A DNA stretch of 64,000 nt from Mytilus trossulus. Lineage: Eukaryota. Location: assembly GCF_036588685.1 (NCBI RefSeq), contig NC_086383.1, forward strand, positions 46,128,001 through 46,192,000, written 5' to 3'. Each line of letters begins with the position of its first letter. Positions within the stretch are counted from its first letter, which is position 1. The notes below the pieces were generated by a model that was not told where the DNA came from, did no database searches, and saw only the letters and a program-made list of their open reading frames with translations. The position numbers and the translations under genes were made by a program. Shown here one piece after another: positions 12,881 through 40,405 of this stretch.

Positions 12881-12956
12881 TTATTCTTCTGTAATTCCTT
12901 TTGCAGCAAGTTCGTCAAGGACACGTGAAATATATCCTGGATCTGGATATCCAAAC
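12881..12956 (-). CDS. Gene A coding exon 4 (DTC C-terminal helix and stop)
   Basis: Acceptor tttcag|G, then [24 protein letters not shown]. Confidence 0.93.
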
Positions 12957-15900
12957 CTGAAAGAAAAAAAACAGCTTTTGGAAAAAAATGTGTTTTACTG
13001 AGCATGCAGTCAAATTAGATGTCGACAGTATTGCTTGTCTTAAATAAGTAATGTAGCTTGTAGATATCCTTTTGTGTTGGAACATTTACACATACTCGGT
13101 GTGTCTGCAACGTTAACACACATGGTAGTTTTATCAGATTACAATATCTACAAACGAACGGAAATGGAATAAATGACTATGATGTTGACAAATCTGGTAT
13201 TGTAGCTACCTCACACGCCATCTGTCCTACGTCTTTTATATGTTGACCAATCTAATGTCAAAATTACCTCGCAGGTCCTATGTACTCCATCTATTATATT
13301 GACAAATCTGATATTATAATTAACTTGCAGGTACTACGACTATTATATTAACCAAACCAATCGTATTGTTACCTCTCAAGTCCCCTGTTTATTATGTTGA
13401 CAAATCTCATATTATATTTACCTAGCAGGTCCTCCATCTATTCTTGTTTTATGATGAACATCGTTCCATGTGACCACGTCTTCTTTTCCAGTTGTCCTAG
13501 AACTGCCAATCGTAAAGAGAATTCGTTGTTGGAAGGCACGTCTCAGTAACCTGTGAACCTTCTGTCCCTCTGTGTTGTCTGGTAAGTAGGCTGTCCGTTT
13601 AGTTCCTCTGTAAACTTTACCTGGGTTTGGTTGACCTTGCTTATGGAATATAATTATAATTAAATAATATACAATGAACGCTTTATGCAGATCTATAAAC
13701 GTAAATATAAATAGTAGTATTGTCCAATCGTACAGTTTTGCCTAACCGGTTACTCGGATAATCATTCGACCGATTAACCGGTTAACCGGTAGTTTAAGTT
13801 GATGTTCGAAGGTCTTATACATAGAACCCTACAAATGTACGTCTTATCCATAGTACCCTACAAATGCGACTGTCATACAAGTGAGAGGTTTCTCTAGCTA
13901 TAAAACTAGGTTCAATCCACCAAGAAAATGCCTGTACCAAGTCAGGAATATGACAGTTGTTATCCATTCGTTTGATGTGTTTGAAGTATTGATTTTGCCA
14001 TTTGATTTGGGACTTTCCTTTTTGAATTTCATCGGAGTTCAGTATTTTTGTGTATTTACTTTTTGTTATAATTCGATGAATTGAAGTTTGTCCTTTGACA
14101 TTGTAAGACTTGTTTGTGAGGATTTCGACTCAGTTTGACTTTTAATAATCCAACACACCGTCTCTACTATGGAGTTTGTAATAGCTTCAGATTGGGATTT
14201 TTTTTTTTTTAATTTTATTTCGTCGAATTGAAAATGGCAGATACGATGATTCTTTCATTTTGTCTTGATGTCTCAGAAAATAATATGGAGTGTTTCAAGT
14301 TATTTTATTAAATACACAAATAAAAAATGCAGCACCCTTGTGTGTATTAAAACTATACTTAAAAAGAATAGATAAGTGGAAAGTACCAATTGAACATTCG
14401 AAACTAATGAATCGAAATGTATTTAACAAAAGACAAGAAAAACAACCACAAAATACATTTAATTCTGATTAACAAAAACCCACTAAATATTGGGTTATCT
14501 CAGGGGATCTGTTAGGTAATTGATCCCTATCCACACGTGACAATTGTGACACTTTTGAAAAACATGTCCTTCAAATGTTACAAATTCGAAATAATTTATT
14601 CATACCATGCGTGGTGCTTGTATCAACATGAACATTATATTTGATAATATCTTTTTAGTAAGGGTTATCAAAGTGTTACATGTTGGCAAATGTAATTAGT
14701 ACCCATGTTAAAATGTGCGTAGATTATGACACTTTATTTCGCATCACAAACCCATTTGCCAATTTTTATTTTTGGTGTTGTGCAGCCTATGTTTTATTGG
14801 AATTAAATGATAAATGATGGTAAAAGAATATAGACTTTTAGTATACGCGTTACTTTTCTCTCTCTCTCTCTCACACTCTCTCTCTCTCTCTCTCTCTCTC
14901 TCTCTCGATCTCTCCCTCTCTCTCTCTCTCTCTCTCTCGATCTCGATCTCGATCTCGACTTTACTTTTGTATTACATTCTCAGAATACTCACCAATTGTT
15001 TCCCATCAAGAAATGAATAGAAAATCTTGATGACCCCACATTTTTTATAACCTTTGAGATGGATATCATTTTGGAAGCATTCGATCATGATTCCGTCTGG
15101 CTGATTTCCGGTTAGTTTGCCGTACACCATGTTGCACACTGGACAAGCAGGTGTTTGTATAAAGCACTTCTCAATACATATTTTACAAAATATATGCTTG
15201 CATCTAGAAAGCTGTTTTAATTTTGAACTCGCTAGTTCTTCCATGCAAACAGGGCACGTGTCTTTTTGTATATCAACCACACTTAGAAAGTAGGACTTTC
15301 CATTGTCTTGTGTTGCCTTCAGTGACTGTACAGGTTTAAGCGTAAGGAGACATGTTCTTGAACTTTTTACACTATGCTCTATAGTATCTACCACTCTTTT
15401 ATCAGGATGGACTATCATCACAGTTCGAAGCCCTTTGATTGACGTTTTAGTCGTCGCAAACTTATCAATGCTTGCGCAAATTAAATCAATTACGAAATCA
15501 ATCGGTGCACCACCTTTTCTAGTGCCAATTACTGGAAGAGCTATTGATTCGTATCCCATATGCTCTGTTCTTGAAAAGATATCAAAAAGAAGAGATTCAA
15601 GTCCATCTACCCAGTTAGATTGCTTTTGTCTGGAAAACTGAGGTACAACCGCATGGAAAATGTGTTTACATTTCAATTTTCCTGTTGCTGGAGTTGGTTG
15701 AAATGCCCAGTTAAGAATGCTCGGATGCATTTTCCTCAAACAATCTTTACATACGTCCAGTAGAGGGCCTCCCTTTTCAGCGATGATTTTAGCAATAATA
15801 CCGCCACTTTGTATTGAGGAATCTTCACTACTGAGTATCACATCTACAGTTAAATCGACAATACTATCCGTTGATGCAAAGACTTCAATAAAAGAAGTAT

Positions 15901-38232: not shown

Positions 38233-38343
38233 AAAACTTAACTCTGATACAAATATATCAAAAAGTAAGATGCGACCCCTGTTGGATCTAAGTCGGTTTA
38301 TTTTTTGTCCGGAATATTTTCCGTGTCCTTTAGAAGGTTTTGC

Positions 38344-40405
38344 TTAAGAACTTGTCCCAGACGCGTTGTCATCTCGTAAAGTAGTACTTCCATCATTACT
38401 TAGATCAAATTCTGAAACACGTCCATCTGCTCTACCAATCAGAGAAAAGAAATCATCGTCTTCTGTAGACGTCAGTGCTGTTCCATTGACCGATCTTGAA
38501 TCTATATCTGAATTATTAGGGTTCGCAGATGTATCTGTATTGATAGGGTCCGATTTGAAATCTATAGCCGAATTATTGGCGTTGGCAGATGTATCTGTAA
38601 TGGTAGGGAGTAAAGCAGCTACAATGTTTGATTTTTCGTCCGTTGTCTTGTCGTCCGGATCTTTATAAGCCAGCTTTTTATTATCATTAGGTTGTTCTGT
38701 CATAGACTGAGTTTGACCATCTACAGGACATCCAGGTATTGAAATCTATAAATATCGTTGAAATATTATTAATCAAGTTAAAGGTTTATAAATATTTTAT
38801 TTGGTCTAGAAAACTGGGACTCACTAAAAGTATTTTAAAATCTTCATAGACCTTTTTCCCAATTTGCATTGAATTCTAGGATACTAAGTATTATAATGCA
38901 CATTGCCATGGAATTGAAACCAATGGCTATCAATACAAACCGCCCGGTATCCATCTTTGGAAGCATGTATACTAGAGTTAACTTGACATCATACAAATCT
39001 ATGTAATGGTACTGATGTGGTTTATAGATATAGGAAGATGTGGTGTGAGTGCCAATGAGACAACTCTCCATCCAAGTAACAATTTAAAAATTAAACCATT
39101 ATAGGTTAAAGTACGGCCTTCAACTTTAGTTTGTTAATTTGGGCTCGCCTTTAATTAAGAATTGAATGCTTCTGTTTGCAACTTCATTGGGGTGTAAAGG
39201 CGTTGACCGAAGTACATGCGGACGCACATTCTCAAAATGTGCGCACGATCAACGCTTTTACAACCCTATGACGTTACAAAAAGAAGCATTCGATACTTAT
39301 AATTATTATTTTTAGATAGGATCATGAAAACACGAATTTCATCATTTTTTTTAAATTTAATTCACATGTGCACAGGCTTTATTGTGGTACCTCGTGCTAT
39401 CAGGAATGATAAGTTTTATTGTGTAATGCAATTGCTTAAGGTGATGTGCAGTTAGCCAATCAGAATATCGTATTATAATGAAACATACATCTGATGTAAT
39501 TATTTTATATTAAACAATACTTGAAGCGCTAAAACAATTTTACATGTTCTAAGGATTGAACAATATAAAATAATTCACGAAAAGTAAGAACAATATACCA
39601 GAATATTTTGTTAAAAGGGATATTCATAAAGTTTCAACAAAAAAAAGGTGCATACAAATGATAAAACTAGTAAATACATAGATGAAGTATGAATAAGAAT
39701 GAATTAATAAAATTGATAAGATCAGCAATAAAAAAATGAAAAAGATAAGTATACATTTATTTTTAAAAAAAATTGTTGTAGAAATAAAACGATCAGGAGA
39801 TAGTGAAATTGTTCATTGATATTCTAAGTTACATCTGTTACAATATGTTCTATAGTTTAGATCTGTCCAAAACTATTTTAGAAGCTATTCTGATGTTTTT
39901 TTTTATGAGAACTGTTCTACCGAATACCGTTTTCTATACAAGTTCTCTTGACAGATTTTAAGAGCGTTTCAAAACTGATCTACATTGTAAAGTCAAAGTT
40001 TTGTTTTCGTATTTAAGCCAATAAATAACTTGCCTGTATGTTGTTTTCTTCTTTTGCTCCCGGATTTCTTTTTTGGAGATTTTCTGCGATTTTCTCCGTC
40101 GTATTTTGTTGCTGCGATGCCGTTTTTGTGATACCTTGACTATGATTAACTTTGTGACCTCGCATAAAATGTTCTTGATCTCGTTTTGCGACATTTGTTG
40201 CTGTCGCAGAAGAAGCTGACACTTTTTCTTGTGATTTTTTGTTACTTGGTTTTTTGATACTAGATACTGTTTTGGTTTGGCTTGGGTTTACTGGATTGTA
40301 TATGCCTTCTCCAAAAACTGCATTTTGTATGCTAATCCTTGCATTCATAGCAGTATGTTCTATGTTTTCTTTTGCTTATGTTTTCGTTGGATATTTATCC
40401 TTCTT
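38344..40405 (-). pseudogene. Copy C: truncated paralog of gene A (exon 1 40405-40034; 5' part of exon 2 38745-38344)
   Basis: QNAVFGEGIYNPVNPSQTK matches gene [20 protein letters not shown]. Exon 2 starts ISIPG as in gene A, and DDKTTDEKSNI matches [12 protein letters not shown]. The ancestral ATG position reads AAG (40405), and there are in-frame TAAs at 40378 and 38346. No macro, RING or DTC sequence follows. Confidence 0.8.

Follow-up and report, generated by a model that had tools for sequence, protein, structure and literature searches.

Two intact minus-strand paralogues of the mussel Mytilus trossulus, here termed gene A and gene B, encode proteins in which a disordered N-terminus is followed by a macro domain, a C3HC4 RING and a complete DTC domain. 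These tandem genes probably represent the pteriomorph bivalve branch of a widespread invertebrate 'macro-DTX3L' family, that is, Deltex-type E3 ubiquitin ligases carrying an in-chain ADP-ribose reader, with both reader and ligase activity being predicted. Both genes lie in a stretch of 64,000 nucleotides (the window) at positions 46,128,001-46,192,000 of the chromosome-scale contig C11, which is N-free and AT-rich (GC content about 0.32); coordinates given below are those of the window. The assignment is built on findings demonstrated directly below: both genes have defined structures, gene A is spliced, the domains have predicted folds, the catalytic residues are conserved, the macro domain evolves under purifying selection and the family is widespread. 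Both genes are already predicted in RefSeq, as LOC134691199 (gene A) and LOC134691201 (gene B).

Gene structure and splicing

Gene A (12881..18573, minus strand) has four coding exons at 18573-18212, 16309-14993, 13639-13422 and 12956-12881, with the stop codon at 12883-12881, as defined by tblastn of the database protein P0007 (LOC134691199 isoform X2, 659 amino acids), splice sites and joints in RNA contigs. Gene B (25042..30976, minus strand), defined by protein match and splice sites, also has four coding exons, at 30976-30623, 29135-27834, 26372-26155 and 25117-25042, and corresponds to the database protein P0001 (649 amino acids). Exons were searched by window coordinates, and the whole proteins are represented by these two database matches. 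All exon boundaries in both genes are GT-AG. Identity of gene A to P0007 is 100% in exons 2 and 4 (tblastn), 97.6% in exon 1 and 88% in exon 3; for gene B and P0001 it is 99-100% in exons 1, 2 and 4 but 74% in exon 3. The lower values in exons 1 and 3 of gene A and exon 3 of gene B arise because the BLAST alignments run past splice sites (past the acceptor in gene B). The exon models, splice boundaries and RefSeq protein matches bear out the claim of a first-pass annotation of this DNA that two intact genes are present, and exactly two copies of the macro-RING-DTC coding set are found in the window by tblastn and blastn. Long minus-strand open reading frames at 14972-16327 and 27816-29105 each contain Pfam matches to Macro, RING and DTC positions 1-38, and hence the macro domain, the RING and the start of the DTC share one exon in both genes. 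A further reading frame at 26151-26504 carries DTC positions 28-111 at an E-value of 8e-33.

Gene A is spliced as predicted. Contigs of four public sequencing runs, one on record as metatranscriptomic RNA-Seq and three guessed to be RNA, were placed on the gene A region (12800-18700). The joint 13639->14993, which connects exons 2 and 3 and whose ends (CT..AC) correspond to GT..AG on the minus strand, occurs in contigs of all four runs, and the joint 16309->18212, connecting exons 1 and 2, in contigs of three. Contig depth is zero in the introns at 12997-13390 and 14573-14966, and the region of the last exon (12800-12996) is covered in all four runs. The expectation that transcripts join exon 2 to exons 3 and 4 thus holds at least for the exon 2-3 joint, the only one of the two among the joints listed. 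The runs consist of assembled contigs and are therefore silent on expression level. At the 5' end, residues 5-22 of the Mytilus orthologues P0005 and P0006 match 21363-21310 (minus strand) at 83% over 18 residues, and a splice acceptor lies directly before the exon-1 ATG of gene A (18574/18573), the point at which an RNA contig also ends. Gene A thus has one or more additional exons upstream, or else begins at an alternative start.

Domain content and predicted folds

The macro domain is encoded at 15346..15886 in gene A (Pfam Macro 9.5e-11, 42 bits, at about residues 265-445 of P0007) and at 28188..28742 in gene B (46 bits, residues 250-434 of P0001), against a Pfam cut-off of 22 bits. The C3HC4 RING follows at 15131..15262 in gene A (Pfam zf-RING_2 and zf-C3HC4) and at 27972..28103 in gene B, with all eight zinc ligands present (Cys465, 468, 483, His485, Cys488, 491, 502 and 505 in gene B). 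The DTC begins in exon 2 of both genes (14993..15112 in gene A, covering Pfam positions 1-38, and 27834..27953 in gene B), continues through exon 3 (13422..13639 in gene A, with the catalytic-histidine motif WNDVHHKT, and 26155..26372 in gene B, holding His614; Pfam DTC 8e-33 in the latter) and ends in exon 4 (12881..12956 in gene A, which begins FGYPDP and runs to the stop, and 25042..25117 in gene B, holding Phe626 and Glu640). On the whole proteins the DTC is complete (positions 1-133 of 133), with E-values of 6.6e-55 on P0001 and 3e-54 on P0007.

Structure prediction with AlphaFold2 on P0001, using a 42-sequence alignment, agrees with this layout. The predicted local distance difference test score (pLDDT, as ten-residue block means) is 87-97 over the macro domain (residues 250-434) and 84-96 over the RING-DTC (residues 461-649). 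Three stretches score under 50, namely residues 1-147, residues 163-249 and the linker at 435-460. The disordered N-terminus measures about 240 amino acids in both genes. In Foldseek searches of the PDB, with TM-scores normalised by target length, the DTC superimposes on that of human DTX3L (3pg6) with 58% identity, a root-mean-square deviation (rmsd) of 1.0 A and a TM-score of 0.97, and the RING-DTC of DTX1 and DTX2 is matched at E-values of about 1e-17. The macro segment matches solved macro domains at TM-scores of 0.81-0.93 and rmsd of 1.6-2.2 A, including YmdB (0.93), macroH2A1.1 (0.87, rmsd 1.7 A), PARP14 macro1 (0.86), PARP9 macro1 (0.83) and PARP14 macro2 (0.81). The domain order proposed in the first-pass annotation (disordered N-terminus, macro domain, C3HC4 RING, full DTC) is accordingly supported by both Pfam and AlphaFold2, as is a macro fold, which the annotation had placed at about 15889-15380: Pfam detects the domain there in gene A, and for gene B AlphaFold2 gives a confident fold with Foldseek matches.

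A DTX3L-type catalytic module

A C3HC4 RING leading directly into a complete C-terminal DTC is the arrangement of Deltex E3 ligases, and the DTC of the mussel proteins also retains the residues associated with catalysis. When gene B is aligned to 3pg6, His614 corresponds to His707 of DTX3L, Phe626 to Tyr719 and Glu640 to Glu733, so that the histidine, the glutamate and an aromatic residue in the pocket are all in place, at the positions held by His582, Glu608 and His594 in DTX2 and by His707, Glu733 and Tyr719 in DTX3L. In DTX3L, His707 and Glu733 form the catalytic pair for ubiquitylation of ADP-ribose, and the Y719A substitution blocks ubiquitylation of single-stranded DNA (PMC10810221, PMC11460948). 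Among 153 relatives, the histidine position holds His in 146 and the glutamate position Glu in 140, while at the position of Tyr719 88 have Phe, 50 have Tyr and 12 have His. Phe626 was considered as a peculiarity of the mussel pocket and rejected, phenylalanine being the commonest state (88/153) and also occurring in bird and caecilian DTX3L.

The module is closest to that of DTX3L, as had been proposed. In a PDB sequence search the DTX3L DTC is the best solved relative (E 2.7e-47), with 164.7 bits for this domain alone compared with 159.6 bits for the RING and DTC of DTX2 and 137.6 bits for DTX1; placement in the tree described below agrees. Named vertebrate DTX3L proteins are found among the best 150 sequence matches, with RING-DTC identities of 50-56%. 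In DTX3L the N-terminal RRM and KH-like (D1-D3) domains mediate oligomerisation and binding to PARP9 and PARP14. Pfam detects neither KH_DTX3L nor RRM on P0001 or P0007, so that the resemblance of genes A and B to DTX3L is confined to the catalytic module.

A probable reader-type macro domain with an altered pocket

By PDB sequence search the closest macro domain is PARP14 macro2, followed by macroH2A1.1, PARP14 macro1 and AF1521, with scores of 82 bits for the two-macro PARP14 chain, 46 for macro2 alone and 44 for macroH2A1.1. Both glycine loops are kept, as SGGMVA and IGTGKNGAP. The motifs VSSED and GTGKNGAP are shared by both paralogues and all Mytilus orthologues, and the NAAN and G-(I/V)-(F/Y)-G motifs of MacroD/Mac1-type hydrolases are not found. 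Sequences of the macro2/macro3 type have been reported to be incompatible with hydrolase activity (PMC10221186), and the pattern in the mussel proteins fits a reader rather than a hydrolase. Binding of ADP-ribose by this domain is a prediction.

Divergence of the two paralogues

The two macro domains share 67% amino acid identity, and the ratio of nonsynonymous to synonymous divergence (omega) between them is 0.16; the RING and the first part of the DTC give 0.135 and 0.12, respectively. The macro domain is, by this measure, under purifying selection. Synonymous divergence (dS) is saturated in exon 2 (1.0-1.5) but only 0.19 in exons 3 and 4, and DNA identity is 71.5% in exon 2 versus about 90% in the DTC exons. 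Identity between the genes decays within about 30-60 bases of intron flanking exons 3 and 4. The low dS together with this sharp decay suggests that the two small DTC exons have been homogenised by gene conversion. The disordered N-termini, with 21/122 identical residues, are essentially unalignable.

Distribution of the family

A HMMER search with P0001 against 1.84 billion cluster representatives (at 50% identity) returned 4564 matches at E-values up to 1e-3 and 804 at E-values up to 1e-30. Among 158 proteins examined, comprising the 150 best representatives and Mytilus proteins, 101 combine macro and RING-DTC, with one to four macro domains upstream of the RING-DTC. These include proteins from bivalves (Pecten, Ylistrum, Argopecten, Pinctada, Saccostrea and Tegillarca), gastropods (Gigantopelta and Haliotis), a brittle star (Amphiura), hemichordates (Saccoglossus and Ptychodera), an octocoral (Xenia) and amphioxus (Branchiostoma, where the source itself names the protein DTX3L). 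The architecture thus spans Cnidaria, Mollusca, Echinodermata, Hemichordata and Cephalochordata; macro-less vertebrate DTX3L is also among the top matches. In a midpoint-rooted FastTree phylogeny of the RING-DTC segment, the Mytilus proteins, seven in number, group together with a support of 99 next to a clade of scallops (97), and both belong to an invertebrate group with a macro domain in 74 of its 78 rows. Macro-less vertebrate DTX3L is nested among macro-bearing amphioxus and hemichordate forms; as the root is a midpoint root only, the direction of change is suggested rather than proven.

A recent survey of DTX3L across 126 metazoan species concluded that its macro domain was lost when PARP9 emerged, and that the PARP9/PARP14-type linkage arose only after lungfishes had diverged (Picard et al. 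2026, bioRxiv 10.64898/2026.04.23.720386). By the first of these conclusions the fused form, which is the common state, is probably also the older one, from which vertebrates made two proteins. The first-pass annotation had presented the pair as a special, possibly uncatalogued Rosetta-stone fusion. This claim fails because the architecture is common (101/158 proteins and at least nine loci in this genome), automatically annotated and already remarked on in the preprint. The fusion is neither lineage-specific nor a new hard-wiring of the vertebrate complex. That the architecture might prove common and already characterised had been named as a ground for abandoning the claim: it is indeed common and noted in the 2026 preprint, so that half of this ground applies. 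Literature searches found no paper combining DTX3L with Mytilus and, for oysters, nothing on macro-Deltex proteins.

Within the mussel genome there are at least 14 DTC loci, of which at least nine (on C4, C11 and C12) have a Macro match within 7 kb upstream on the same strand. The seven such loci beyond the window lie on C4 (11.00, 34.62 and 59.52 Mb) and C12 (2.23, 2.53, 14.29 and 14.32 Mb), and most have macro domains that are far more canonical (up to 123 bits) than those of genes A and B. More than 50 PARP-domain matches are also present in the genome, many clustered with macro matches. A PARP gene adjoining the locus was considered as a counterpart of the PARP9/PARP14-type linkage and rejected: no PARP catalytic domain was found in the window or within 8 Mb on the chromosome, the nearest being about 8.6 Mb away.

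Alternative explanations

Several observations count against reading genes A and B as ligases with an in-chain ADP-ribose reader. The RRM and KH-like N-terminal domains of vertebrate DTX3L are absent (by Pfam, and with pLDDT below 50 over this region), PARP catalytic domains are missing within 8 Mb of the locus on the chromosome, and the supporting tree is a FastTree phylogeny with a midpoint root only. The transcript evidence comes from assembled contigs in all four runs, with only one on record as RNA. In the macro domain, SSED (VSSED) stands in place of NAAN (VNAAN), the motif KDSI has its aspartate shifted by one position compared with GDIT, and Asn/Ala take the place of the loop-2 aromatic (GIFG); with these canonical contacts missing, ADP-ribose binding is not assured. 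Binding of ADP-ribose, ligase chemistry and any immune role of these two genes are all predictions at present. That the fusion itself is an annotation artefact, merging a macro gene with a separate Deltex gene, is nevertheless vanishingly improbable. In M. californianus, isoforms of a single locus resemble both gene A and gene B, so that merged models do occur in the genus, but no finding supports one here. In each of the two mussel genes a single uninterrupted reading frame and exon encodes the macro domain, the RING and the first 38 DTC positions, an arrangement that refutes the artefact; the exon 2-3 joint is present in four runs and the same order of domains in 101 of the 158 proteins.

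Of more weight is the possibility that the macro domain has lost ADP-ribose binding and now acts in protein interaction or as a structural element, like the macro domains of macroH2A1.2 and macroH2A2, leaving ADP-ribose to be found via the DTC pocket only. This is unlikely, but has to be taken seriously given the SSED motif, the shifted aspartate and the missing loop-2 aromatic, the variability of the aspartate-equivalent position among the scallop sisters, and Pfam Macro scores (45-49 bits for genes A and B, with others reaching 123) that are among the lowest of the DTC-adjacent macro domains in the genome. On the other hand, both glycine-rich phosphate loops are kept, an acidic residue aligns with the glutamate of the ADP-ribose-binding PARP14 macro2 (KEGV compared with KDSI), and the best sequence matches are ADP-ribose-binding macro domains; the omega of 0.16 indicates constraint but is silent on its object. 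It is quite improbable that the domain is an eraser, an ADP-ribosyl hydrolase which would proofread or take off the ADP-ribose or ubiquitin-ADP-ribose that the ligase itself produces, a role proposed for PARP9 macro1 beside DTX3L. PARP9 macro1 and PARP14 macro1 are hydrolases that reverse ubiquitin-ADP-ribose (PMC10810221), and the mussel fold matches YmdB, AF1521-type folds and PARP14 macro1 at TM-scores of 0.86-0.93, but the loop-1 asparagine and loop-2 aromatic critical for hydrolysis are absent, sequences of the macro2/macro3 type are reported not to allow this activity (PMC10221186), and the sequence favours macro2 and macroH2A1.1 over macro1. A more speculative idea, with only a small chance of being correct, is that the mussel and scallop branch has kept, under purifying selection, a macro pocket which differs from the canonical one and may have been retuned to another ligand. 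This could be the ubiquitin-ADP-ribose ester formed by the DTC of the same protein, or some other nucleotide-derived signal, and the proteins would then be self-reading 'writer-reader' ligases; in addition, gene conversion restricted to the DTC exons, beside freely diverging N-termini, would mark a module in which one catalytic engine is kept while targeting is diversified. An in-chain reader coupled to a DTX3L-type ligase thus remains the favoured reading of the pair.

A truncated third locus and repeats in the window

Beyond gene B, a third locus (38304..40429, minus strand) is a truncated 5' remnant of a gene-A-like paralogue, recognised by similarity to gene-A orthologues at E-values from 1e-4 to 9e-8. 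It consists of an exon-1-like piece at 40429-40019 (e.g. AVFGEGIYNPVNPSQTK compared with AMFGEGMNKPANASQTK in the orthologues) and an exon-2-like disordered piece at 38745-38304, which shares ISIPG, SNI..(A/S)LL.TIT and RVSEFDL with them and contains an in-frame stop at 38346-38344. A third full copy was rejected, because outside genes A and B nothing similar to the macro domain, the RING or the DTC turned up in the window by tblastn, by tblastx or by a very sensitive tblastn search using ten homologues. The decayed third copy claimed initially is thus a remnant with an in-frame stop, but not a decayed full copy. Of the proposed expansion, a local tandem duplication and a truncated remnant are borne out, but the third copy has no catalytic domains.

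Several repeats lie in and around these genes. About 70 bases past the end of the exon-2-like piece comes a satellite (37559-38230) whose unit is 40 bp (also 118 and 157 bp) and in which a TTTGATGAGCGATGA motif recurs; an Rfam E-value scan of it, prompted by GATGAG motifs, gave nothing credible, and Rfam at gathering level gave no match in the whole window. A 63-bp minisatellite at 31419-34280 (about 45 copies, 88% identity) takes up the greater part of the interval from the 5' end of gene B to the third locus and produces spurious repeat reading frames such as 33956-34246. In intron 2 of gene A, a high-copy dispersed repeat (13785-14178) has a summed contig depth of 780-48,000 in the four runs, compared with tens to hundreds on the exons, and has related copies at 35237-35382 and 25336-25386. 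Intron 1 of gene A contains a 356-nt tandem repeat at 17319-17984 (1.9 copies, 96% identical), to which a repeat at 42722-43516 is related. Its plus-strand motifs at 17549-17592 and 17905-17948 match Hammerhead_1 at 33 and 27.8 bits (E-values 3e-6 and 2e-4) against a gathering threshold of 34, contig depth over the repeat is in the thousands and several joints run backwards. These features fit a retrozyme-like repeat giving circular or tandem RNA.

Proposed mechanism and comparison with known systems

In the mechanism proposed for the mussel proteins, the RING would recruit E2~ubiquitin while the DTC pocket, with His614, Glu640 and the aromatic residue at the Tyr719 position, would bind ADP-ribose or a nucleic-acid 3' end and activate its hydroxyl; alternatively, the DTC may place an ADP-ribosylated protein for lysine ubiquitylation. 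The macro domain, putatively of the non-hydrolytic reader type seen in PARP14 macro2 and macroH2A1.1 and tied to the RING by a predicted disordered linker of about 25 residues, would most likely dock the ligase on mono-ADP-ribosylated targets made by the mussel's many PARPs, and the divergent disordered N-termini probably set localisation or partners.

The nearest counterparts are the macro-containing DTX3L orthologues of non-tetrapods, such as those of Branchiostoma lanceolatum (CAH1249985.1), Pecten maximus (XP_033726612.1) and Xenia (XP_046839279.1), in which a single chain likewise has one or more macro domains ahead of its DTX3L-type RING-DTC; they conserve the DTC histidine and glutamate and belong to the same RING-DTC tree clade. 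Many of these relatives have two to four canonical macro domains and reach up to 3381 amino acids, whereas in the mussel pair and the scallop sisters one divergent macro domain (SSED) follows a long disordered N-terminus, and RRM or KH-like domains are absent. What is locally specific is modest: a pteriomorph subfamily with one divergent reader-type macro domain and no RRM/KH, present here as a tandem pair, with DTC exons probably homogenised by conversion and rapidly diverging disordered N-termini, beside a truncated remnant.

Like the human PARP9-DTX3L heterodimer, the mussel proteins pair a putative macro reader with a DTX3L RING-DTC that has the same catalytic His and Glu. However, the human macro domains reside on a separate protein, PARP9, which is bound via the KH-like domains of DTX3L, while the mussel proteins have neither KH-like domains nor any PARP-like domain, and their macro domain is closer to PARP14 macro2 and macroH2A1.1 than to PARP9 macro1 (31 bits). 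The functional analogy is sound and in line with published RING-DTC biochemistry. The same working logic, an ADP-ribose or poly-ADP-ribose reader in cis with a RING ligase, is also found in DTX1, DTX2 and DTX4 (WWE-WWE-RING-DTC) and in RNF146 (WWE-RING), although in these the reader is the WWE domain, which recognises the iso-ADP-ribose of poly-ADP-ribose, rather than a macro domain. By Foldseek, the mussel RING-DTC is 41% and 38% identical to that of DTX2 and DTX1, compared with 58% between the mussel and DTX3L DTC domains. With PARP14 macro2 and macroH2A1.1, its best sequence and fold matches, the mussel macro domain shares the IG(T/S)G..G.P loop and residues of the non-hydrolytic reader type, but identity is only 22-25%, the loop-2 phenylalanine is missing and, relative to macroH2A1.1, the acidic adenine-side residue is shifted.

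The pair is not a new kind of system, as the architecture is abundant in invertebrates and was remarked on in the 2026 preprint. It is instead a clean natural example of a macro domain and DTX3L in a single chain, joining functions that are split between PARP9 and DTX3L in vertebrates, and it adds bivalve data to the idea of an old fused state. At about 400 residues without the disordered N-terminus, these proteins could be a convenient model for the coupling of ADP-ribose reading to the ubiquitylation of ADP-ribose and nucleic acids.

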